DNA of 64,000 nt from contig CATNEN010000003.1 in the NCBI GenBank assembly GCA_950097015.1, forward strand, positions 12,958,001 through 13,022,000, given 5' to 3'. The first letter of the stretch is position 1, and each line of letters opens with the position of its first letter. The notes under the pieces are model-generated. The model saw only the letters and a program-made list of their open reading frames with translations. It was not told the origin of the DNA and ran no database searches. Shown here one piece after another: positions 11,128-51,768 of this stretch. The stretch comes from Macrostomum hystrix. Lineage: Eukaryota > Animalia > Platyhelminthes. The translations under genes and the position numbers were made by a program.

Positions 11128-14100
11128 ATGCAACCGTCAGCTAGTGAAAAGCAGGCCCAGCGTGTGGAGCAGGAGCTGCTAGATCAGATTATTCGCTTCT
11201 TTAAACTATTCGGCCTTGTTGCCGGAGTCTGGTTAATTGGCTACCTGGGCTTCAGTGTCACCTGGTTACTGGTGGCTGTACTAGCCTATGTCATCACTAG
11301 TCACATTAAGGCCCAGCGCAAGGCGCGAACCAAGGCTTGTCAAGCCGTTGCTAGGTCTAAATTCTTTGTATAATTCTAATTTGATTGCTGCGATTCTGGG
11401 ATCCTTAGATTTAGGACAGATCCTCATATTGAAAACATTTTCTCTCTTTGATACGCATCGCGATCATTTTGGGAGTTTTATTCCCAAATCCTCATTGAAG
11501 ATCCTCATATTAGAAATTTTTTATGCTCAGATCCGTAATGTCTTCCCAGATCCTCATATTAGGTATTTACTTCCACAAATTCTACGAGTAAATCCTCATT
11601 GTCGGATATTTTCTTCATCCTTATAAAGGGATTTTTCTTCGCATTACGGCATGGCACCGCCTAGGCATGCTATCCACCAGCTTCTTGCACATTTTCTGGC
11701 GAGATGGCAGCCCACGAGTGCTCAATGATACGGTACAGCTGGTCAGTGGAAGCTGGCTGCTGCCTCTGGATGTCCCGCTCAACCCAGTTCCATAGATTCT
11801 CAATCGGGTTGAGGTCTGGTGAGTGCGCTGGCCAGTCCATGGTGCGTATGTTGTTCTCAGCAAGCCATGCCTACACAACCTTGAAGGTGTCCTTGGGATC
11901 GTTGTCCTGCTGAAACTGCCAGCTGTTCACTGCACTCAGTGGCCGTGCATCTACTGCCTCTGGTAGGTGGCTGCTGAGGATGTCACGGTACTGCTGACTA
12001 TCCATGATGCCCTCAATGCGAGTTATTGGCCCAGGTCCAGCTCTGGAGAACGCAGCCCACACCCCACCCACCCCACAGCCCACACTGCCGCCTCCATGCT
12101 TCACGGTACCAATGGTGCACCTGGGATCGAATTCCTCGGCAGCGCACATACCGGCGGCCATCAGAACCGGTGCGGAAAACTTGCTCCCGTCTTTTGACTT
12201 ACTTGACTTATCTGCAGGGCGGTCCGACGGACGCAGCGGGGAGGCGGGAGTCGCCCATTCCGCTAATCCCTGAAAGACCCGCAATCGGCCGATGGCGCGG
12301 GGCCAGTCAGGGAGGTCCGTGTTCGGTCCTTCCTGCAGCTTGTTCCTCGCTGGGGAAGAAAGAGGCTCGTCTGGTAGCCCTTAGGAACCGGACGAGCCGC
12401 GGGATGTTCTCGGATCTGCAAACATCGTCCATTGATGGGTTTGGTCCGAGGTGATTGAGCCTCTCTCTGGTGAAGAAAGGGCAGTGGCAGACGAAGTGCA
12501 GGGCATCCTCGTCCTCAAGGTTGCAGAAAGGGCACAGCTCACTCCGGAGGTCTCCACGGAGGAAACAGTGTCTGGCGTAGCAGCCATGGCCCGTGAGGGT
12601 CATGGTGAGGGCCCGGATGTCCTTCCGGGTCTGGTTCAGAAGGACCTTCCGGAGCCGAGCGGATGGCACTGGAACTGCCGCTTTGGATTGGCGGCAGTTA
12701 GTGGTGCTTCTCCACCGGGTAAGATGGAGGTTGGCGGTCCAATCATTAATCTGACGATAAATGACGGTGCTCGGAATCGGAGCCGGGGGGGAGGGGCCCG
12801 GCGCAGAGCTGGCTCCTCCCTGCTTGGCCAGGTGGTCAGCAAGCTCGTTACCAGGAAAACCGGCGTGCCCTGGTATCCACTGAAGTCTGACGGTATTCTT
12901 ACCGGCCAGGTTATTGAGCTGCCGGACACAGTCGGAGACTGTCCGGGAGGTTGTGGTGGTGTGACAGAGGGCTTGCAGAGCAGCCTGACTGTCCGAGTGA
13001 AAGATGATAGTCCTGCCTGAGATGTTTTTCTCATTCAACTCCGCAGCGCAGGAGCTGATGGCCAGGACCTCGTTCTGGAAAACGCTCGAGGATTTTCCAG
13101 TGTGTTGGGCGTGTGTGGCGACAACACGTCCGTTGATAAGGATACAGACCCCGAAGCCAGCGGAGCCATCCTTCATGGATCCGTCCGTGTAGCAGTGGAC
13201 CTCCTGGGTGTTCCAGTGGTCGCTAACTTGGTCCCTGGTGGGGATGAGAACCTTAAAGCGCTGAAGGAGGTTGAGCGAGCACGGTTCACCGTCCGTAAGG
13301 ACATTGATTCCGTTGCTCGCACCCAAGTCTCTCAGGCAAAGGTCCGTGTGCGGCAGGAGCTTTCGCTTCGCTGCCGCTCGTTGGGGGACGAAGCGCACAC
13401 CGGCATCAAGGAGACGCCGGGCGGTTTTTGCCGCCTCCCCGCGGATAAAGATATCGAGCGGGAGGATGTTCAAGAAGGCGTTGAGGCCATCGAAGGGGGC
13501 GGATGGCGGGGCGCTCATGATCGTCCGACATGCGCGACCTTGCACTCTCCGAAGAGTCTCATGGCAGGTCTTAAGCTGAAGGGCACTAGCCCAGATCAGT
13601 CCGGCGTACGAGACAGCCGGCCTGACCATAGCAGTGTAGATCCACCATAGGCGTTTGGGGGTGAGACCCCACGTGTTGCCCACCGCCCTGCGCAGCTGCG
13701 CCAGGATCGCAAAGGCCTTTTTGGCTTTGGCATGGACATGAGGAGTCCAGCTGAGCCTGTGATCGAGCGTTATGCCCAGGCATTTAGTTTGCTTCTGGAA
13801 GGTGATGTCCTTTCCATACAGCTGCAGGGGGCGAATATGCCATTTGTTTTTGCTGGTGAACATGATCGCCGCTGTCTTAGACTCGGAGAGCTTCAGACCG
13901 CAGCGAGTTGCCCATCTTTCGGCGTTGTTGATAAAGTTTTGCAGAAGGTCTCGGAGGGCCTCTGGTACCGGGCCAGATGCCACTGCCGTAACATCATCCG
14001 CATAGCCGACCTTTAGGATGGGGTCTGGCTGAGAGTCTCGTAAGAGCTCGTCGATAACCATGTTCCAGAGAACTGGTGAGAGGACGCCGCCTTGTGGGCA

Positions 14101-35300: not shown

Positions 35301-38300
35301 CCAAGTTAATCTCCTCTATGGAATCTGAGCGTTAATCTCCAAGTTAATCCCCAAGTTAATCTCCTCTATGGAATCTGAGCGTTAATCTCCAAGTTAATCC
35401 CCAAGTTAATCTCCTCTATGGAATCTGAGCGTTAATCTCCAAGTTAATCCCCAAGTTAATCTCCTCTATGGAATCTGAGCGTTAATCTCCAAGTTAATCC
35501 CCAAGTTAATCTCCTCTATGGAATCTGAGCGTTAATCTCCAAGTTAATCCCCAAGTTAATCTCCTCTATGGAATCTGAGCGTTAATCTCCAAGTTAATCC
35601 CCAAGTTAATCTCCTCTATGGAATCTGAGCGTTAATCTCCAAGTTAATCCCCAAGTTAATCTCCTCTATGGAATCTGAGCGTTAATCTCCAAGTTAATCC
35701 CCAAGTTAATCTCCTCTATGGAATCTGAGCGTTAATCTCCAAGTTAATCCCCAAGTTAATCTCCTCTATGGAATCTGAGCGTTAATCTCCAAGTTAATCC
35801 CCAAGTTAATCTCCTCTATGGAATCTGAGCGTTAATCTCCAAGTTAATCCCCAAGTTAATCTCCTCTATGGAATCTGAGCGTTAATCTCCAAGTTAATCC
35901 CCAAGTTAATCTCCTCTATGGAATCTGAGCGTTAATCTCCAACTTAATCCCCAAGTTAATCTCCTCTATGAAATCTGAGCGTTAATTTCCAAGTTAATCC
36001 CCAAGCTACTCTCCTATATGGGATCTGAGCGTTAATTTCCAAGTTAATCCCCAAGCTACTCTCCTATATGGGATCTGAGCTATTTGTTTAGTTAATCTAC
36101 TTTATGATGTCAAGGATTAATTTCCCAGTTAATCTCTTCTTTGGTATCTGTTTGTTAATCTCTCCAGCTTCGGGTTGGCTGCTTCTGCAATGTTGGCGCC
36201 TGTCAGCGCTACCTGAACATCACGGATGAGCAATTATTAAACAATCTTCGCGCCGGGCACGTCTGCGGTGACAGTGTCGACTTAGTCGACGGTAGGCCTA
36301 CTGGCGCAGTGCGGGCCTCATTCGGCTACATGTCGGATGAATCCGACGCGGACGCTTTGATCTCAATGGTGGCGGAGAATTTCGTTCTGACAAAGCTGAT
36401 ACCGCCAATTCCTGGCTTGGCGACGCCGTCTTTGATGTCCATGTCACGCGACGAGCTCGCCAGCTTGTTCCGCGGAGGTGTCGTGGACGGCGGCAACATC
36501 AAAGCGTCAGTCAATAGCGGCGCCGCCCATTTGGCTCGCATCTTTCTCTATCCGGTGAAATCGTGCGCCGCCTTTGAAGTCGCCGCCAGTTGGCCAGTAG
36601 ATGGTCGGGGTTTTTATCTGGACAGGCACTGGATGGTTGTTAACGAGTCTGGCCTCTGTCTGACTATGAAACGAGAGTCGCGTCTTAGTCAGGTATGTTT
36701 AAATGGTTTCGCACGGTTGTCGGAGCTTAAAAATAGATTTCTATAGTGTATTAGTATATACTCTATTAGTATACAAAATAAAGTAAATCTGCTGTCTGGC
36801 AGGCATTGTGCAACTGTAACTCCTTCTTCTAAGGAAAAATTACAAAAAATATTTAATAAAATGCATAAAATGCATTTGTGCTACTGTCTAATTAGTAGTA
36901 CTTTATAATAATAATAATAATTGCATGAGGGCTGCGGGCAGTGGCACATTATTTGGTGACACTAGACTCGCAGCCAGCAAGGAGGCAATACTGCCAATTT
37001 GGCAGACTCCTGAGCACACACACACAGGTGTGTACATCCGCCCTGATTTTCTCATCATCAGGCAGTGTACACTCTCACTGTGCCTTGGAGGTTGGTCCTC
37101 AAGGGCGTAGATTGCACGACAAGCCGCCAAGCCTTCTCTCCGCGGCTGCATCCTAAATTAATGTGGCATCACCGCGGAATCGAGCTCCGAGCCACCGACC
37201 TCCTATTAGTAGTATCTACTCAATACATTTACCTTGAGATTTACCGCCAATCCTCAGGTACGGCCGTTCATCGACCTAGAAAAGCGGCTACTTATTATGA
37301 ACTCTCCCCAAGCCGAACGCAACGTAATTGTGCCGATGGACGCCGGGCATCAGACTGCAGCCCTCTGCCTCAGCAGCCGCGTCTGCGGCAGCCGGGTTCG
37401 CCTATTGGACTGCGGACAGGCCGCCGCCGACTGGCTGGAGGCCGTCATCGGCTATCCCTGCCGGCTGGTCCGCCAGGACGGAGCCCGCATGGCCAAGACT
37501 GGCGAACAGGTCTGTCTCTCTGTCTGTCTGTCTGCCTGCCTGCCTGTCTGTCTGTGTGTCTGTGTGTCTGTCTGTCTGTCTGTCTGTCTGTGTGTCTGTG
37601 TGTCTGTCTGTCCTACTAAAATCTTCAATATTCCGTCCTTGTCCTGACTTGCCGCGACTCTTATTTATCCCCGGCCAAATATCGCAGGCCATCTCGCTAG
37701 CCAATGAGCAGCAGTTTCTTCTGCTCAACGAAGCCAGCGTCGCCCACCTGCTCGACTGCATCGGTGGTGAGAGTCCACTGGACCTTCCCCAGCTAATCGG
37801 CAGGTTTCGAGCCAATCTGGTCATTCGCGGCTGTCAGGCCATGTCCGAGGAGGCCTGGACTCGATTGAGCATTGGTGATAGAAAGTTTATAGCCCACGGT
37901 GTCTGCACTCGGTGAGTTACTAAAGAGAGAGCGGATTGAAGAGGTAGGGAGCGGATTGATGAGGTAGGGAGCGGATTGATGAGGTAGGTAGCGGTTTAAA
38001 GAGGTAGGGAGCGGACTGATGAGGTGGGGAGCAGATTGATGAGGTAGGGAGCTTATTAAAGAGGTAGGGAGCGGATTGATGAAATGGGGAGCAGATTGAT
38101 GAGGTGGGAAGCGGATTAAAGAGTAAGGGAGCGGATTGAATATTTATGGAGCGGATATAGTTGGTAGAGAGCGGATATAGTTGTTAGACAGCGGATATGG
38201 TTGGTAAAGAGCGGATTGAGTTGGTAGAGAGCGGATTGAGTTGGTAGACAGCGGATATGATTGGTAGAGAGCGGATATGGTTGGTAGAGAGCGGATTGAG

Positions 38301-39304
38301 TAAGTAGAGAGCGGATTGAGTTAGTAGACAGCGGATATGGTTGGTAGACAGCGGATATGATTGGTAGAGAGCGGATTGAGTTAGTAGACAGCGGATATGG
38401 TTGGTAGACAGCGGATATGGTTGGTAGGGAGCGGATATGGTTGGTAGAGAGCGGATTAAGTTAGTAGACAGCGGATATGGTTGGTAGACAGCGGATATGG
38501 TTGGTAGACAGCGGATATGATTGGTAGAGAGCGGATATGGTTGGTAGGGAGCGGATATGGTTGGTAGGGAGCGGATATGGTTGGTAGGGAGCGGATATGG
38601 TTGGTAGGGAGCGGATATGGTTGGTAGGGAGCGGATATGGTTGGTAGAGAGCGGATATGGTTGGTAGGGAGCGGATATGGTTGGTAGGGAGCGGATATGG
38701 TTGGTAGGGAGCGGATATGGTTGGTAGGGAGCGGATATGGTTGGTAGGGAGCGGATATGGTTGGTAGAGAGCGGATATGGTTGGTAGGGAGCGGATATGG
38801 TTGGTAGGGAGCGGATATGGTTGGTAGGGAGCGGATATGGTTGGTAGGGAGCGGATATGGTTGGTAGGGAGCGGATATGGTTGGTAGGGAGCGGATATGG
38901 TTGGTAGGGAGCGGATATGGTTGGTAGGGAGCGGATATGGTTGGTAGGGAGCGGATATGGTTGGTAGGGAGCGGATATGGTTGGTAGGGAGCGGATATGG
39001 TTGGTAGGGAGCGGATATGGTTGGTAGGGAGCGGATATGGTTGGTAGGGAGCGGATAACAGTGATGTAAGCTCAGTCCAATCTCTCATTTCCCGCCTGTC
39101 AGTTGCGACATGATCGGCATCGATCAGGACACGGGCGAATCCACAGTGGAACCGATGCGCACCCTGTCACAGATGAAAGGCGGCGCTTTAAAGTTTGGCC
39201 TGTACGTTTCGGCGGCGCCTGATACTCTGTCCTCCAGATCGGAGGCAGTCGAAGATGGGCCCACATTTCAATTGGCCGTTGGCGATGTTATCAAGGCTGA
39301 ATAA
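29345..39304 (+). CDS. MOCOS: Molybdenum cofactor sulfurase (NifS-like PLP domain + MOSC), ~773 aa
   Basis: Exons 29345-29497, 32738-33340, 33987-34349, 36168-36692, 37258-37509, 37688-37911, 39103-39304, all GT-AG and in frame. Motifs: YLDHAGATLY, VFTSGATAA, FAFPAQCNFSG, SFYKMFGYPTGLGAL, LRVGCFCNVGACQ, YPVKSCA, SLANEQQFLL, RFRANLVI, CTRCDMIGIDQ. Confidence 0.95.
30102..31986 (-). pseudogene. Helitron Rep/helicase N-terminal fragment (STPR-type repeats, Zn finger), frameshifted near 30683 and truncated
   Basis: CARCNALRWANETPGMCC, YNSCFQMTSFGA, FKVQGQVYH / GSLLP..PKFQQIYF, ERRYNAP, YDTLQYPLIFWDGEDGY; no HUH nuclease or Pif1 motifs. Confidence 0.88.
31180..31690 (-). repeat. 69-bp coding tandem repeat (23 aa RRNETAVQTQQRQEQNRDRTAEA), 7 identical copies + 1 diverged
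   Basis: CATTGCGACGGGCC recurs at 31182, 31251 ... 31665. Confidence 0.95.
33445..33840. repeat. 22-bp minisatellite (AAGTGCCATTTTCTAATCAAAT)n
   Basis: MOCOS intron 2. Confidence 0.92.
34385..36085. repeat. Compound 38-bp / 50-bp minisatellite built on GTTAATC subunits
   Basis: MOCOS intron 3; period 38 at 34501/34539, period 50 from ~35160. Confidence 0.95.
36904..37198 (-). mobile_element. SINE family B with (ATT)n tail
   Basis: Shared body, 3' stem-loop and ATT tail; MOCOS intron 4. Confidence 0.82.
37510..37612. repeat. TCTG/TG microsatellite
   Basis: Starts at the donor of MOCOS intron 5. Confidence 0.9.
37930..39056. repeat. 20-bp minisatellite (GCGGATATGGTTGGTAGGGA)n
   Basis: MOCOS intron 6; diverged 5' copies grade into homogeneous 3' copies. 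Confidence 0.95.
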
Positions 39305-40515: not shown

Positions 40516-42107
40516 ATGTACTGTCCAACATCTAAAGAAGGTTACCATGGCAACAATCACAACGATCCAAATATTTCCGCGGCAGCAACAGGAGCCCAGC
40601 ACCAGCAGTCAACTTGTCCTCAGCAGCAGCAGCAGCAGGGCGATCTGTTTGTCTGTGGTCGGTGTTCCATCAGATTTCACAATATTGATCAATTTCTAGT
40701 GCACAGGAGTACCGCTTGCCCATTGGCGCAGAGTAATGTCATCTCAACGGACCGACTTCTGGCTCACCTACAACAGGGACAGCCGATTCAGTATCAACAG
40801 CAGCATTATCATCATTCTCATGATTCTCATTATCATGAGCAGCAGCAGCAGCAGCAGCAGGTGTCCGATGGCAATCTGACAATGTCTAACGAGGCAGTCT
40901 GTGCCAGTATTGCTGCTAATCAACAAATTCATCAAACTGCTGATACTGGAATCACACAATTCATTGGCGCACCCGACACTGCCGCTCAGGTTAGTCCTAA
41001 GAAGTTGACGCATTTTTAATCCATTTGTGTGTACTTCTGATTTCTTGTTTTCGCATTGAATTCGTTATCTTTTCTTATTTACCTAATCCCTTTTCTCATT
41101 TATCTAAACCACTTCTTTATTTGCTTAATCTGTTTCCTTACTTCCACTAATCCGTTTCTTAATTACCCAATCCATTCCCCTAATCCGTTTCTCACTTACC
41201 CAACCCATTCCCCTAATCCGTTTCTCACTTACCCAACCCATTCCCCTAATCCGTTTCTCACTTACCCAACCCATTCCCCTAATCCGTTTCTCACTTACCC
41301 AATCCATTTCCCTAATCCGTTTCTCACTTACCCAATTAATCTTCCTTAATCCGTTTCCCTTGTATTCCAAATTCATTAATCCGCATTCTTTATCTATTTT
41401 CTTAATCGCATTCATGATTTGCATTTCTTTAAAACCCTAATCCGTTTCTTTACTTGCCTTTACTTACTCGCTTTTCTCGAAATCGAATTAAAAATTTCAA
41501 ACTCAAAGGATTTCTTGTCGAAATTCATAAAAAATGCATTTTTCGCTACATTTCGGCTATTGATTTATGATTTACTATTATCCCAAATTAAACATTTTAC
41601 AGGCCTACAATTCCAACTATAGCACAGTGGCCAATCTTGGCGACTGCACTGTCGCCATGAGTCAAAACGGTTATTATGATTCGGCAGCACTGACTGCTCA
41701 TAACAATGCTAATCGAACTCAGCAGCAGCAGACACAAGCTCTAGACGATCAGCAATCAGCTCTGCCCCTCACTACACTACTATCGGAAGCGTCAGTAGTA
41801 TTAGATGTTGTTGGATCCAATGCTGCGCCTATCAGTACAGCCCAAGTGTCTGCAGATAATCCATGCTTTGATTATCAACAGCATCAGTATCAACCACAGC
41901 AGCATTATCACCAAACTGAACATATTGCAGCTTACACTGATCACTATGTACATCAGCATCAGCATCAACAGCCAGTTATTGAATCGTCTAACTACTTGTC
42001 GAATAGTCATCATCAGCATTATCATCCCCACCAAGATCCTCATTACAATCAGCATTATCAACATCATCAGCACCAAGTATTTGAAAACGGGTCCTATGTC
42101 TGCCAGC

Positions 42108-42148
<41 letters not shown>

Positions 42149-45100
42149 AAACATCATAATCATCATCAACAACAACAATATCAACAACAACATCATCAAC
42201 AACAACAACAACAACAACAACAACCGAATGTTTCGGAGCCAGCTTCATCTGCAACAATGCAGCATCGTTTATCGTCGTACAATGTTGCTCATACTACTGA
42301 TAATGCTACTTCTAGTAGTCATCAACGCAACTACAATCAAAGTAAAAGTGGGAAATATAGAGCGTCCGGCCAAATTGTTCAGGCAAGCACTAATCGACCG
42401 CAATCGTTTCCTTGCACAATGTGCGATCTAGTTTGCAAGCATCAGAATCAATTGACGCTTCATATGCGCAAACACACGGGTTAGTACATTTTTCGTATAT
42501 TTTTACTTTTTATGCACAGTTCTACTTGTTAAACAATTTAGTAGTGTAGTGCGCAAATTTTGCGGCTCAGAAAACAAGTTTCCGTGGGTTTTATTCATTG
42601 ACGTCTTATGATATCAATGAATTTTTTTCATACACATTGATAGGTACATATAGATATGATTCCATTTTTATTTTATTTAGAATCCTAATGAAGGATTAGA
42701 AATAATGATATATGAATTTAATTTTCGATACATATCTGATAGGGTCATGAATTTTCTTGCAACGTTTCAATACATATCGGATAGGGCACTGAAGTATTTC
42801 GTTAATTTTTCGATACATATCGTCTTTAAAATCTATTCACCAACCCCGCAGGCGAGAAGCCATTCCAATGCGTCATCTGTGGCCGGTCGTTCTCGCTAAA
42901 GCACAATGTTCGCAAGCACATGAATTCGCACAAGATTTGGCCAGCCGTGACTTCACAGCCGTTGCCGTCGTCAAATTTGACTTCGGCAGTCGCCACAGCG
43001 GATCCTGATGAACAGTGCAATGAAGCCGACGCAACTGCGGCCGCGATCGAAGCTGACGAGGACGCCGCTGCCTCTGCATTGACAAAATCTGCATCGTCAG
43101 CAACAGCAGCAGCGGGCTCTTCCGCGGTTCCCACCGATGCCTTGGTAGTTCGACCGTCCAAGTCAATTAGCGCGGCGGTTCGAGTGAAAGCTTACACGAT
43201 TCTGGAATCGGATGGGCTTGGAAGAAATTCGGCCGAACCTCTGGTAAAACCTCTATTTAAATGGTCTCTATTAAAATCTTCAGGATCATTCTGAAATCTT
43301 CGGGATCCTTTAAAATCGTCAGATTCATTCTGAAATCTTCAGGATCATTCTGAAATCTTCAGGATCATTCTGAAATCTTCAGAATCATTCTGAAATCGTC
43401 AGGATCCTTCTGAAATCTTCAGGATCATTCTGACATCTTCAGGATCATTCTGAAATCTTCAGGATCATTCTGAAATCGTCAGGATCATTCTGAAATCTTC
43501 AGGATCATTCTGAAATATTCAGGATCATTCTGAAATCGTCAGGATCATTCTGAAATCTTCAGGATCATTCTGAAATCGTCAGGATCATTCTGAAATCGTC
43601 AGGATCATTCTGAAATCTTCAGGATCATTCTGAAATCTTCAGGATCATTCTGAAATCTTCAGGATCATTCTGAAATGTTCAGGATCATTCTGAAATCTTC
43701 AGGATCATTCTGAAATCTTCAGGATCTCAAATCTTCAGGGCCATGGGTTTAAAAGTGGATTTCTTCATCTCCAACATTGCTGAAGGTTCTGGTGGACAGT
43801 CGTCACGAGTGTCGCTTCTGCAATCAGTGCTTCCCCAGCTATCACAGGCTGCGCAGTCATCTGCATCAGCTGCACGAACAGTGCAAAGTCTATCGCTGCC
43901 TGCTAGCAGCTTGTCAGTTCCAGTGCGGCCAGCTTGATCCGTTCCTTCGTCACCTGGATCAGCACCGCACAGCGGGTGAACTGGCCTATCCCTGTCACCT
44001 GTGCGGCAAACAGCTGCCAACATTGCAGCTCCTGGCTCTGCACGAGGCTGCTCACGGGCCGCCTAATCGGGCCGAATCTGATGTTGAAGACGAAGACGAC
44101 GATGTTCAGGATGTTGGCAAAGTTCGAGGACGAAGGACAGCTCATAGAGAGCCTGCTCGGTTGGTGATTCATATTTATGTACTCTGGGTGTCAGTTGGTG
44201 TATTGTTGTGGGTGTCAGGAGTTGGTGTATTGTTGATGGTGTCAGGAGCTGCTGTATTTGGATGTCAGAAGCTACTGTAGTGGGATGTCAGGTGCTGTTG
44301 TATCGGGATGTCAGAAGCTACTGTAGTGGGATGTCAGAAGCTACTGTAGTGGGATGTCAGAAGCTACTGTAGTGGGATGTCAGAAGCTACTGTAGTGGGA
44401 TGTCAGAAGCTACTGTAGTGGGATGTCAGAAGCTACTGTAGTGGGATGTCAGAAGCTACTGTAGTGGGATGTCAGAAGCTACTGTAGTGGGATGTCAGAA
44501 GCTACTGTAGTGGGATGTCAGAAGCTACTGTAGTGGGATGTCAGAAGCTACTGTAGTGGGATGTCAGAAGCTACTGTAGTGGGATGTCAGAAGCTACTGT
44601 AGTGGGATGTCAGAAGCTACTGTAGTGGGATGTCAGAAGCTACTGTAGTGGGATTTCAGAAGCTACTGTAGTGGGATGTCAGAAGCTACTGTAGTGGGAT
44701 TTCAGAAGCTACTGTACTGGGATGTCAGAAGCTACTGTAGTGGGATGTCAGAAGCTACTGTAGTGGGATGTCAGGTGCTGTTGTATCGGGATCTCAGAAG
44801 CTACTGTAGTGGGATGTCAGAAGCTACTGTAGTGGGATGTCAGAAGCTACTGTAGTGGGATGTCAGGTGCTGTTGTATCGGGATCTCAGAAGCTACTGTA
44901 GTGGGATGTCAGAAGCTACTGTAGTGGGATGTCAGAAGCTACTGTAGTGGGATGTCAGAAGCTACTGTAGTGGGATGTCAGAAGCTACTGTAGTGGGATT
45001 TCAGAAGCTACTGTAGTGGGATGTCAGAAGCTACTGTAGTGGGATTTCAGAAGCTACTGTAGTGGGATGTCAGAAGCTACTGTAGTGGGATGTCAGAAGC

Positions 45101-47552
45101 TACTGTACTGGGATGTCAGAAGCTACTGTACTGGGATGTCAGAAGCTACTGTAGTGGGATGTCAGAAGCTACTGTACTGGGATGTCAGAAGCTACTGTAG
45201 TGGGATGTCAGAATCTACTGTAGTGGGATGTCAGAAGCTACTGTAGTGGGATGTCAGAAGCTACTGTAGTGGGATGTCAGAAGCTACTGTACTGGGATGT
45301 CAGAAGCTACTGTACTGGGATGTCAGAAGCTACTGTAGTGGGATTTCAGAAGCTACTGTAGTGGGATGTCAGAAGCTACTGTACTGGGATGTCAGAAGCT
45401 ACTGTAGTGGGATGTCAGAAGCTGCTGTAGTGGGATGTCAGAAGCTACTGTAGTGGGATTTCAGAAGCTACTGTAGTGGGATGTCAGAAGCTACTGTAGT
45501 GGGATGTCAGAAGCTACTGTAGTGGGATGTCAGGTGCTGTTGTATCGGGATCTCAGAAGCTACTGTAGTGGGATGTCAGAAGCTACTGTAGTGGGATGTC
45601 AGAAGCTACTGTAGTGGGATGTCAGAAGCTACTGTAGTGGGATTTCAGAAGCTACTGTAGTGGGATGTCAGAAGCTACTGTAGTGGGATTTCAGAAGCTA
45701 CTGTAGTGGGATGTCAGAAGCTACTGTAGTGGGATGTCAGAAGCTACTGTAGTGGGATGTCAGGTGCTGTTGTATCGGGATCTCAGAAGCTACTGTAGTG
45801 GGATGTCAGAAGCTACTGTAGTGGGATGTCAGAAGCTACTGTAGTGGGATGTCAGAAGCTACTGTAGTGGGATGTCAGAAGCTACTGTAGTGGGATTTCA
45901 GAAGCTACTGTAGTGGGATGTCAGAAGCTACTGTAGTGGGATTTCAGAAGCTACTGTAGTGGGATGTCAGAAGCTACTGTAGTGGGATGTCAGAAGCTAC
46001 TGTACTGGGATGTCAGAAGCTACTGTACTGGGATGTCAGAAGCTACTGTAGTGGGATGTCAGAAGCTACTGTACTGGGATGTCAGAAGCTACTGTAGTGG
46101 GATGTCAGAATCTACTGTAGTGGGATGTCAGAAGCTACTGTAGTGGGATGTCAGAAGCTACTGTAGTGGGATGTCAGAAGCTACTGTAGTGGGATGTCAG
46201 AAGCTACTGTACTGGGATGTCAGAAGCTACTGTAGTGGGATTTCAGAAGCTACTGTAGTGGGATGTCAGAAGCTACTGTAGTGGGATGTCAGAAGCTGCT
46301 GTAGTGGGATGTCAGAAGCTGCTGTAGTGGGATGTCAGAAGCTACTGTAGTGGGATGTCAGAAGCTACTGTACTGGGATGTCAGAAGCTACTGTAGTGGG
46401 ATATCAGAATCTACTGTAGTGGGATGTCAGAAGCTACTGTACTGGGATGTCAGAAGCTGCTGTAGTGGGATGTCAGAAGCTGCTATAGTGGGATGTCAGA
46501 AGCTACTGTAGTGGGATGTCAGAAGCTGCTGTAGTGGGACACCTGGATCTGTTGTATTAAAATGAAGTCTCATTTTCCCCCGCAGACGCGGCAGCGGTCG
46601 ATGCCTAACTGTGACCAGTTTTCGTTGTCAAGAATGTGGCGCCCGTTTCAAATCGGCCCGAGCCGCCCAGGTGCACAGGCACCGAGCGCATCACAGCTCT
46701 CATCGCTGCCCAGTGTGTAGGCGTAAGTTTGTTTTCTATCAGCGTCTGCGAGCGCATATGGCTAGTCACGGCGCCCTACGAGAAGAGCTTAGAGATCGGT
46801 CAATCAAGGTTACTACCAGCGCCGAACGTAATTTCGCCTGTCCGCTTTGCCCGAATCGCTACGGTAGAAAAGTTCGATTGGATCATCATCTAGTAACGGC
46901 GCACACTTCTAGATCGTCTTCTACAGCGTCAGCTAGCAGTAACAGCTTAGCCTGTCCGATACCTGGCTGTCAGAAGCGTTGCTCGAATCACGCTCTACTA
47001 AAGCTGCACCTGTTGCGCAGGCATGCCGATTCTGTTGCCGATGCTAGAGTTACGAATTTCGACTGCGATATCTGTCCTAGGAAGCTGTACAATAGGCGGG
47101 CCTTCATTCGTCACATGCGTAAGCACGAATCGATTTTGCCAACTGGTTCAAATCAGGTCCCACTGGCCTGTCAGATCTGCGGCAAATTATTCAAGAGATT
47201 GACAGCTTTGGATAAGCACAAGACTGCTTGTCTAGATAGGCAACAACTCAGGCAGCAGATTGTTAAACAGCGACAATCTGCTAAGCAATCTGCTAAGCCT
47301 ACTGTCGATTCTACTACTGACAGTAGGCTAAGACGTTCCAATAGGCTTCAATGCAAGAAGGCAATAGTGCAGCAGCAGCAGCAACAGGTAGAAGTGCAAC
47401 AGCAGGCTGGCAATTCTGAGATTCAAACCTATCATTGTCTTGAACCGGCTTCGTCAGTAAATTATAATCAGCAGCAGCAGCAACAGCATGAAAGCTTTTT
47501 GCAATTATTGCCCGATCTGGATTCTAGCAGTTGTTGTCTGTCTATTGAATGA
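40516..47552 (+). CDS. ZNF341: ZNF341-like C2H2 zinc-finger transcription factor, ~1027 aa
   Basis: Exons 40516-40989, 41603-42479, 42852-43243, 43786-44159, 46586-47552 in frame. N-terminal DLFVCGRC finger, [33 protein letters not shown] and [27 protein letters not shown] follow the ZNF341 finger order as recalled. Confidence 0.85.
41140..41355. repeat. 33-bp tandem repeat (CCCTAATCCGTTTCTCACTTACCCAACCCATTC)
   Basis: ZNF intron 1. Confidence 0.88.
43272..43730. repeat. 20-bp minisatellite (AGGATCATTCTGAAATCTTC)n
   Basis: ZNF intron 3. Confidence 0.95.
44260..46540. repeat. 23-bp minisatellite (TGTAGTGGGATGTCAGAAGCTAC)n, ~100 copies
   Basis: ZNF intron 4; a recurring variant unit GGTGCTGTTGTATCGGGATCTCA marks block duplications. 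Confidence 0.96.
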
Positions 47553-47822: not shown

Positions 47823-48237
47823 TGGATGTCAGCAACCTTCTGTACTTTGCGAGCAGGAGAGAGAACCCAATAGATGACGGCGGGACGGGTTTGTATCGGA
47901 GAGATAAGACAGGAGAGACGTGACATTAGAGAGATTAGACATAAGATAGATGATTCAGAAATTAGAAGCGGGAGAGAAGACAGGAAGCGAGATTAGACAC
48001 GATAAAGAGCGAGAGAGAGAGAGAGAGAGAGATAAGACGGGGAGAGATATGAGAAGGGCAGAGATGGGACAGGAGAGAGATTAGACATGGAAAATATGAG
48101 ACGGGAAAGATGAGACAGGGAGAGAGATGAATGAGATTAAAGAAAGATAAAAAAGGAGAGATAATACAGGGGAGGGGGAGATGAGACTGGTGAGAGTATG
48201 TTTTTGATGGGGCCATAGGGCCGGGATGAGTTCGACA
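47823..48237 (+). mobile_element. Degenerate near-full-length hAT MITE copy
   Basis: GTCAGCAACCTT..GCGAGC..GAGAGAACC..GACGGCGGG resembles the 5' end of 9621-10001; GA-rich interior; decayed 3' end. Confidence 0.65.
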
Positions 48238-48319
48238 AAAGTGACAAAATCAACGATTAACGATAAACGAGTAACAATTATAATATTTTCCGTCTTTCAG
48301 TTTGAATCAGCCAATTGAA

Positions 48320-48514
48320 ATGCTTCTCCGCTACTATCTGAACGAGCAGGGTGAGCGAGTCTACACTCTGAAATCGGTTGACCCTAACGGTCAGCCGACC
48401 CAGTCGGCTCATCCAGCCCGATTCTCGCCGCACGATCCCTATTCTAGGCAGCGCATCACAGTCAAGAAGAGATTCGGCCTGCTGCCCACCCAGCAGCCGC
48501 CGATCGTGTATTGA
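48320..48514 (+). CDS. NOP10: H/ACA snoRNP subunit 3, 64 aa, intronless
   Basis: [18 protein letters not shown]...[32 protein letters not shown]. Confidence 0.97.
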
Positions 48515-48532
48515 TTCTGATATCGGTGATCG

Positions 48533-48830
48533 ATTTCCACAATCAAACTGGCTACGATAATTATTGACCTGTATTGTGTGAATTGGGTAGTCTATTTCCA
48601 CAATCAAACTGGCTACGATGAATATTGACCTGTATTGTGTGAATTGGGTAATCTATTTCCACAATCAAACTGGCTACGATGAATATTGACCTGTATTGTG
48701 TGAATTGGGTAATCTATTTCCACAATCAAACTGGCTACGATGAATATTGACCTGTATTGTGTGAATTGGGTAATCTATTTCCACAATCAAACTGGCTACG
48801 ATTATTATTGACCTGTATTGTGTGAATTGT
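48533..48830. repeat. 61-bp tandem repeat, ~5 copies
   Basis: TTTCCACAATCAAACTGGCTACGAT.. recurs every 61 bp directly after the NOP10 stop. Confidence 0.93.
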
Positions 48831-49217
48831 ATTAATGTCACTGGGCAGTTATTTATTTATTGTCTTATTATGTTATGCTATTAATATTTGTCTGTCAACG
48901 TTTATTTAAAATATGGGTTAACTTTATGTTACATCCTGAATTGTGTGCATTAATTATAACAAAACAACTCTTGGTGCATTTCATAATGTCCAAAGCAAAG
49001 CTGCAGTTACAACAACTATACTATTGGTGTAATTTTTGCTTTGTTGTGCTTTTATTCCAGGAAACTGTTGTTGGCCTTTGTGGAGTCTTGACTTGACTTT
49101 TTCTTTTTTTTGAATGATTCGCTATTTACTCTTTACTACGTACTGGTGTCGGCTAACTGTGGCCCGCGGGCCGAAGACTGCAAAGCTTCGAATTCCAGCC
49201 ACTTGGCCTAGTAGTCA

Positions 49218-49560
49218 TAATTGGAGGTGGTCTGCGGGCAACGGCACATCATTCGGTGACATTAGACCCGCAACCAGCGAGGAGGCAATTCTGCCCATTT
49301 TGCTGACTCCTGAGCACCCACGCTCATTGGTGTGGACATCTGCCCTGACTTTCTCAACTTTAGGCAGTGTAAAATTTCACTGTGCCTTCGAGGTTGGCCC
49401 TCAAGGGTGTAAATTTCACGACAAGCCACCAAGCCTTCTCTCCGCGGCTGCGCCCCAAATGAATGTGACCTCGCCGCGGAATCGAGCTCCTTCGTGCCGT
49501 GCGCGGACCTTCGTGCGAGAGTCAAACACGCGTTAGACCGCTGTCACTGACCCCAGCCAC
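49218..49560 (-). mobile_element. SINE family B, near full length
   Basis: tRNA-like head near 49555, shared body and 3' stem-loop; a short hAT-end fragment lies at ~49143-49180. Confidence 0.82.
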
Positions 49561-49741
49561 TGGGCCATTCTAGTATTAAATCCTCTACGTCTCATCTCTA
49601 ATCAAATTTTATATGATTTCCATGATTCCGCATGATTGTGATTGGTCAAGTTTGGGTTATATTGCAGTTCGCCAAATATGTCATACTCCCTACTATGAGT
49701 AGCTAAACAAGATAAAAAACTATTCCTTTATTTCTTTTCAG

Positions 49742-50113
49742 CCGCCTAAAGGAAAAGCCAAAGGAGCAGCCGGAGGTGGCGGCGGCGACAAAGACAAGGA
49801 CAACAAAGAGAAGAAAGGCGGCACAGCCGTAAAGGTGCGGCACATTCTCTGCGAGAAGCAATCAAAGTGTTTGCAAGCTTTGGAACAATTGAAAGCTGGC
49901 AAGCGATTCAACGAGGTGGCAGCCGAATTCTCCGAGGACAAGGCTAGGTCTGGGGGCGATCTCGGCTGGATGACGCGCGGCTCGATGGTTGGCGACTTTC
50001 AAGACGCCGCATTCGCCTTGCCAACCAGTTCATTGGACAAGCCGGTGTACACTGATCCGCCGGTGAAGACTAAATTTGGCTATCACATTATCATGGTTGA
50101 GGGCAAGAAATAG
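49742..50113 (+). CDS. PIN4: Parvulin-14 peptidyl-prolyl isomerase; genomic ORF lacks the initiator ATG
   Basis: TTTCTTTTCAG|CCG CCT AAA GGA AAA = (M)PPKGK...; [50 protein letters not shown]. Confidence 0.96.
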
Positions 50114-50269
50114 TTTATAATTATTATAATAATGCGAAGACTTCATAGCTTCATTTTGCTAACGTTAGTTAAACTATAAAAAATAAAGTTAGCAGACATT
50201 CTTCAATGCTACTTAATGTCAGTAGTCATTACTTTCGTATTTTTTCATTTTTAAATTCACCTCTTAGTA

Positions 50270-50425
50270 CGCACTGTCCTTGTCTTCCTCATCGTCAGGC
50301 AGTGTACACTCACTGTGCACTGGGATTTGGCACCTCGAGGGCGTAAATTTCACGACAAGCCCCCAAAGCCCTCTTTCTGCTGCTGTTCGCCTCAAATAAA
50401 TGTGGCCTCGCGACGGATTCGAACG
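50270..50425 (-). mobile_element. SINE family B fragment
   Basis: CTCATCGTCAGGCAGTGTACACTCACTGTGC..GGGCGTAAATTTCACGACAAGCC. Confidence 0.72.
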
Positions 50426-50535: not shown

Positions 50536-50765
50536 GGGGGTTGTAGCCTAGTGGTAACACCGTCGGACTCACAACTTGAAGGTCGGGGGTTCGATTCCTG
50601 ACTTCACTGGAACAAAGTGTGTCCTTTAGTAAGACACTTCAATCTGCATTGCTTCAGTTCAACCAGCAGTTAAATGGGTACCAGCATATGCTTTTATACT
50701 TGAGGGTGAATGTGGGGTTCCCCCCGAGTCCATGGACTGAACAGCCGTACGCAGACTTCAGTTCT
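50536..50765 (+). mobile_element. tRNA-derived SINE family A (CORE-like)
   Basis: GGGGGTTGTAGCCTAGTGGTAA..GGTTCGATTCC, then GTGTGTCCTTTAGTAAGACACTT..TGCTTCAGTTCAACCAGCAGTTAAATGGGTA. Confidence 0.8.
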
Positions 50766-51526: not shown

Positions 51527-51768
51527 TAATAATAATTATTATTCACACAGGTGTGTACATCTGCCCTGAATTTCTCATCGTCAGGCAGTGTACACTCTCA
51601 CTGTGCCTTAGAAGTTGGCCCTCAAGGGCGTAAATTGCACAAAAGGCCCTCAAGCCTTCTCTCCGCGGCTGCGCCCCAAATCAATGTGGCCTCGCCGTGG
51701 AATCGAACTTAGGGACCTTGGTGCGAGCGCAAACGCGATAACCGCTCCGCCACCGACCCCCCTAACTA
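51527..51768 (-). mobile_element. SINE family B with intact tRNA head, flanked by direct repeat CTGAGCGT
   Basis: Head GGGGGTCGGTGGCGGAGCGGTTATCGCG..GTTCGATTCC; direct repeats at 51519-51526 and 51769-51776. Confidence 0.82.

Follow-up and report, generated by a model that had tools for sequence, protein, structure and literature searches.

The window analysed here is a stretch of 64,000 nucleotides of Macrostomum hystrix DNA (C3:12958001-13022000, where C3 is contig CATNEN010000003.1), and the positions given below for the locus are positions in this window. The forward strand carries two small genes, NOP10 and, downstream of it, Par14/PIN4. The PIN4 open reading frame is intact and intronless and runs over 123 codons, from codon 2 (CCG, Pro) to a TAG at 50111-50113. 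Its first codons are CCG CCT AAA GGA AAA, and a splice acceptor stands immediately before them. Between the two genes lie a tandem repeat and a high-copy dispersed repeat (Table 1).

Table 1. Features of the NOP10-PIN4 region, in window positions
Feature	Position	Strand	Basis
ccgtctttcag acceptor for trans- or cis-splicing, 19 nt upstream of the NOP10 ATG	48290..48300	+	sequence
NOP10 gene, own ATG, intronless, possible first cistron	48320..48514	+	Pfam Nop10p 1.3e-23
61-bp tandem repeat, 5 copies, 96% matching, begins 4 nt past NOP10 stop	48518..48829		repeat search
High-copy dispersed repeat, about 345 bp, in NOP10-PIN4 spacer	49210..49555		genome search
ATTAAA, first poly(A)-type hexamer past NOP10 stop, 162 nt before PIN4 acceptor	49575..49580	+	consensus match only
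TAG closing the frame upstream of Pro2	49700..49702	+	no ATG in next 13 codons
Polypyrimidine tract and TTTCAG 3' splice acceptor, proposed SL trans-splice site	49720..49741	+	sequence, motif match
Par14/PIN4 coding exon, codon 2 to TAG stop	49742..50113	+	ORF, Pfam, structure matches, alignment
AATAAA, probable PIN4 poly(A) signal, 68 nt 3' of stop	50182..50187	+	consensus match only

The PIN4 reading frame encodes a full-length Par14/PIN4 parvulin, a PPIC-type PPIase. The product matches the Pfam families Rotamase_3 (PF13616, 6.3e-20) and Rotamase (PF00639, 4.7e-17), and both matches pass the curated cut-offs. Human Par14 structures (1fjd, 3ui4, 1eq3) are matched with E values of 1e-50 to 1e-52 over about 100 residues, whereas the match to Pin1 structures is far weaker (1e-8 to 1e-9). 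The protein of 123 residues lacks a WW domain, and its first 25 residues are rich in Lys, Gly and Asp. Human Par14/PIN4 (PDB 1fjd, 1eq3, 3ui4) is alike in its PPIase domain, in its basic Gly/Lys-rich N-terminal tail and in the absence of a WW domain, and a MPPKGK-type start is common to both. In contrast, the flatworm gene is a single exon without codon 1. The human gene contains introns, and its ATG is genomic.

In an alignment with nine orthologues, PIN4 keeps every invariant family column, including His34, Asp66, Thr110 and His115. We take these residues to be the equivalents of H42, D74, T118 and H123 in the active-site network of human Par14. Searching the genome itself (220 Mb, 42 contigs) gave one match at 100% identity, with 3/3 candidates scored, so PIN4 is single-copy. 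Because the only copy keeps all the invariant columns, the gene is under selection and must be translated.

Reading frame, acceptor and genomic sources of a start codon

According to the sequence-only reading, the frame of PIN4 is closed upstream by a TAG, with no ATG between this stop and the ORF. The claim is correct to the base. As read directly from the sequence, the TAG lies 42 nt, or 14 codons, upstream of Pro2, and the 13 in-frame codons that follow it (CTA AAC AAG ATA AAA AAC TAT TCC TTT ATT TCT TTT CAG) include no ATG. The earliest in-frame ATG within the ORF is codon 77. Since it comes after the conserved His34 and Asp66, initiation there cannot yield a working enzyme. A GTG at 49835 was also rejected as the start; it is merely the call of a bacterial-code ORF tool, and its use would delete the conserved Lys-Val-Arg before His34.

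The alignment locates the gap precisely. Column 1 holds the Met of the orthologues, and in column 2 residue 1 of PIN4 is aligned with the P of their MPPK..., so that PIN4 is empty only at the initiator Met column. Most of the nine aligned orthologues start with MPPK, in agreement with the earlier statement that Par14 orthologues begin in the MPPKGK manner. Together, the sequence and the alignment bear out the view that the ORF opens at codon 2, right behind a splice acceptor.

The AG of this acceptor occupies 49740-49741, and the preceding 20 nt are 90% pyrimidine. Its TTTCAG fits the Macrostomum trans-splice acceptor motif [T/C]TNCAG (PMC8629364). Over positions 48515-49760 (1,246 in all) the motif YTNCAG is found five times, so the chance of finding one exactly at the codon 1/2 boundary is about 0.4%.

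Between the TAG and Pro2 the frame contains two near-cognate codons, ATA at 49712 and ATT at 49730, and one of them could serve as a non-AUG start on an unspliced or otherwise processed mRNA. However, both fall in the polypyrimidine/AT-rich region of the acceptor. Initiation at either would add 4-10 unconserved residues, and the orthologues show no such N-terminal extension. ATA and ATT also rank among the weakest near-cognate start codons. We give this explanation the slightest chance of those considered.

The missing ATG could also mark a decaying or untranslated copy of PIN4, whose start codon is lost and which no longer yields protein. The lack of a genomic ATG and of an intron, together with the dispersed-repeat copies on the flanks, would suit such a copy. 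Against it, this is the only PIN4 in 220 Mb, no stop or frameshift interrupts its 123 codons, the invariant family residues are all present, and the product shares 89% identity with its M. lignano counterpart. Decay is thus very improbable in our judgement. We also rejected a retrocopy of a spliced leader (SL)-bearing mRNA, as no SL-like sequence precedes the ORF; a proper acceptor is present there instead of SL or poly(A) remnants, and PIN4 is therefore not a retrocopy.

A cis-spliced exon is the other possible genomic source of the AUG. On the plus strand, neither ATG/GT nor ATG/GC occurs between the NOP10 stop (48514) and the PIN4 acceptor. These scans uphold the earlier observation that the interval holds no ATG/GT mini-exon. 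The published cis-donor consensus GT[AG]AG (PMC8629364) has zero occurrences within 48515-49741. The nearest plus-strand sites are at 44236 (ATG/gtgtca) and 46758 (ATG/gc), both within ORFs of the upstream zinc-finger-like gene. The sole ATG/GTRAG in the 49.7 kb upstream of PIN4 is found at 12602, 37 kb off, whereas introns of M. hystrix average 692 nt (PMC10468722). A search upstream for a cis exon ending in ATG/GT, the check named by the sequence-only reading, finds none within reach of the PIN4 acceptor and one weak in-frame alternative at 48189. From these scans, there appears to be no cis exon ending in ATG within reach.

The alternative at 48189 emerges when the first exon is allowed to consist of an ATG and a few more codons. 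The sole GTGAG-type candidate is then ATG AGA CTG/gtgaga, which ends at 48189, upstream of NOP10. Positions 48181-48189, followed by GTGAGA, are in phase 0 with the acceptor, and joining them to 49742 would give MRL-PPKGK...; an ATG-ending exon far upstream would be another form of the same explanation. The donor at 48190 could serve the NOP10 acceptor at 48300 as well, and a 5' exon shared by both genes is conceivable. On the other hand, the 48189 site lies within a GA-rich tandem repeat that holds several other ATGs and whose composition gives rise to GTGAG. With this exon, the N-terminus, which is MPPK in most of the aligned orthologues, would grow by three residues, and the intron would need to span the entire NOP10 gene. 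As for an exon that ends exactly in ATG, no ATG/GT is present inside the 5.5 kb upstream of the acceptor, and the nearest two sites fall in ORFs of another gene. We consider a cis-spliced exon unlikely.

Spliced-leader RNA genes and a proposed leader-donated start

The SL of M. lignano is 35 nt long, with its sequence printed in PMC8629364, and the M. hystrix SL is identical to it wherever the assembled sequences overlap (PMC10468722). The genome was searched with a 23-nt pattern, composed of the 3' part of the M. lignano SL plus GT, and with the reversed pattern as a control. The pattern (...GAAGACTCAATTTATTGCATG/GT) has at least 20 exact genomic matches, most of them about 11.6 kb apart, and the reversed control has 0. 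We notice that SL RNA genes recur at this spacing of about 11.6 kb on contigs C15, C17 and C42, and that both orientations are present on C17.

In one copy of the SL RNA gene (L003, minus strand, 1547-1436), the leader ends with ...TTGCATG and is followed by a GTAAG donor. This copy is predicted to fold into three hairpins, of which hairpins II and III are separated by a single-stranded AUAUUUUUAG Sm-like site. The fold has a minimum free energy of -34.7 kcal/mol (z = -4.2), a value equalled by 0/200 shuffles. The genome carries a canonical AUG-terminated SL RNA gene with a GU donor. The general statement of the sequence-only reading, that flatworm SLs end in AUG, holds in this genome, which has at least 20 exact AUG-ending SL copies. 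Its proviso that the organism might lack an AUG-terminated SL proves not to be so, as the SL RNA genes end in ATG/GTAAG.

We propose that PIN4 is trans-spliced at 49741/49742 and that the AUG of the SL serves as the initiator, a reading to which we assign a probability of roughly 0.85. Because PIN4 lacks its own start codon, with an ORF that opens at codon 2 behind an acceptor, an SL-supplied AUG would be the most likely source of the missing Met. The 5' part of the PIN4 pre-mRNA, the outron, would be removed at the TTTCAG acceptor, at 49741, and a spliced leader of about 45 nt ending in AUG would be joined straight to the CCG at 49742. With the leader joined there, the AUG would stand directly before CCG. 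The joint would read ...UUGCAUG/CCG CCU AAA GGA AAA, with the leader AUG as codon 1, and the ancestral N-terminus MPPKGK would be regained. A PIN4 transcript joined to the SL at 49742 would carry the leader end ...CAATTTATTGCATG before CCG. The leader would give the PIN4 mRNA both its cap and its codon 1, whether the precursor is monocistronic or polycistronic.

The earlier suggestion that the Met is supplied by the leader is supported, strongly if indirectly, by every sequence-level test, namely the SL RNA genes, the acceptor type, the cis-exon scan and the intactness of the gene. What we infer is the joining of the SL at the PIN4 acceptor, the use of the SL AUG as the initiator and, possibly, a NOP10-PIN4 polycistron. 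A point against this reading is that the SL AUG carries a U at -3, a weak initiation context by vertebrate rules.

The Macrostomum lignano orthologue and published systems

The best match of PIN4 in the protein search is from the sister species M. lignano, with 94% identity over 82% of the query; the protein collection searched contains no transcript-derived protein of M. hystrix. The M. lignano PIN4 (PAA53485.1 / PAA65621.1) has 124 residues and shares 89% identity with it across the alignment. The deposited entry is labelled "5' partial" and starts with KHRMGKSKG, where M. hystrix has PPKGKAKG. In the M. lignano model the frame stays open up to the very first base, which lies one codon upstream of where M. 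hystrix has Pro2. Such an open 5' end would fit a transcript model from which the SL was trimmed off, and the SL AUG would be in frame in M. lignano PIN4 too.

The M. lignano protein model also implies a Met, and hence a genomic ATG, at codon 4 (KHRMGK). With this ATG, SL dependence would not be conserved in the genus, which counts against the leader reading. The comparison of the two species makes strict leader dependence of PIN4 seem specific to the M. hystrix lineage, and it suggests that the start codon of PIN4 may have turned over between leader and genome within Macrostomum.

Two reports state that all reported flatworm SLs end in AUG (PMC9851317, PMC12582326). As both cite it, the work of Cheng et al., 2006 (J Biol Chem 281:733) found the SL AUG in frame in 28% of those S. 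mansoni transcripts that are trans-spliced, and more than 40 S. mansoni cDNAs to need the SL AUG for the start of translation. The M. hystrix genome paper (PMC10468722) holds the final ATG to be a probable part of the SL and notes that the AUGs of flatworm leaders sometimes initiate translation; it reports trans-splicing for 10-20% of the genes of M. hystrix.

PIN4 resembles the trematode SL-AUG system in several respects: the SL ends in AUG, the acceptor lies at the codon 1/2 boundary, and a conserved ORF without its own start has the AUG in frame. It differs in belonging to a free-living member of the Macrostomorpha and in concerning Par14/PIN4, with the junction and its translation inferred from the genome. 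The SL trans-splicing and operons described for Macrostomum (Ustyantsev and Berezikov, 2021, PMC8629364; Wiberg et al., 2023, PMC10468722) are alike in the exact 3' part of the SL and in the [T/C]TNCAG motif. They are also alike in having a conserved housekeeping target and a same-strand neighbour inside the repeat-adjusted distance of 1 kb. In contrast, the passages on the leader in these two papers give the terminal ATG merely as a likely or occasional start, and no SL-AUG-dependent genes are named there. PIN4, NOP10 and Mlig024055 are not named in the text or supplements of the two papers as searched. The slORFs found by slORFfinder (PMC9851317) likewise take their start codon from the leader. 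However, they are mostly new or alternative ORFs, whereas in PIN4 the SL AUG would bring back the canonical ORF that a conserved protein had ancestrally.

The mechanism is already published for flatworms, as are the leader and the AUG at its end, and PIN4 is an ordinary new example; since all three are on record, the case opens no new question. PIN4 would offer an example from a free-living, early-branching flatworm of a mechanism that has been demonstrated experimentally in schistosomes, and it would mean that a conserved housekeeping enzyme can depend wholly on trans-splicing for its translation. The main value of the finding lies in correcting Macrostomum gene models. Where a gene finder demands a genomic ATG, such genes will be missed, truncated or called partial, as in the "partial" PIN4 of M. 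lignano, and a catalogue of SL-AUG-dependent genes would improve the models.

The NOP10 spacer and a possible operon

NOP10 and PIN4 lie on the same strand, separated by a spacer of 1,227 nt. The 61-bp tandem repeat probably belongs to the 3' UTR of NOP10 or else to the intercistronic spacer. The dispersed repeat has 3,229 first-look candidates genome-wide, at 81-89% identity, and shorter copies of it in the same orientation are found at 50278-50424 and 51550-51709, so that PIN4 is flanked on both sides. The tandem repeat (about 312 nt) and the dispersed repeat (about 346 nt) take up about 660 nt of the spacer, and about 570 nt of unique sequence remains.

In M. lignano, an operon is called where same-strand neighbours have a repeat-adjusted distance of less than 1 kb and the downstream gene is trans-spliced (PMC8629364). 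The repeat-adjusted NOP10-PIN4 spacer of about 570 nt is below the 1-kb threshold of that study. Because of this short distance, and because the first poly(A) hexamer past the NOP10 stop lies near the PIN4 acceptor, a NOP10-PIN4 dicistron resolved by the SL is plausible from the arrangement of the locus. We put forward only tentatively the further step that PIN4 is the downstream cistron of such an operon and has come to rely on the SL for both its cap and its initiator codon; this history is possible, though on balance we doubt it. If the operon and the SL dependence are both true, start codons would shift between genome and leader within one genus, and the expression of a conserved enzyme would be strictly gated by trans-splicing.

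At the NOP10 acceptor, an SL joined at 48301 would let the leader AUG open a 6-codon uORF (ATG TTT GAA TCA GCC AAT TGA), which would end 1 nt before the NOP10 ATG. Alternatively, cis-splicing could link this acceptor to the gtgaga donor at 48190, across an intron of 111 nt.

Further upstream, a multi-exon gene, apparently of the C2H2 zinc-finger type and with long poly-Gln/His tracts, extends over 40516-47552 on the plus strand, with an AATAAA 33 nt past its stop. Together with NOP10 and PIN4, the zinc-finger-like gene makes up a trio on one strand, which might represent a single transcription unit. GA-rich tandem repeats with periods of 16 and 47 (47860-48190) fill most of the spacer between the zinc-finger-like gene and NOP10.

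Downstream of PIN4, the segment at 50537-50610 is tRNA-like by eye (ggggttgtagcctagtggtaac...ggttcgattcc) and is perhaps the head of a tRNA-derived SINE. ARAGORN called no tRNA in the window, this segment included. Rfam gave no match in the window at the gathering level and, around PIN4 at E values up to 1, one sub-threshold chance match only. We also notice a 20-bp satellite unit (...gcggatATGgttggt...) that forms a long array at 38197-39037.
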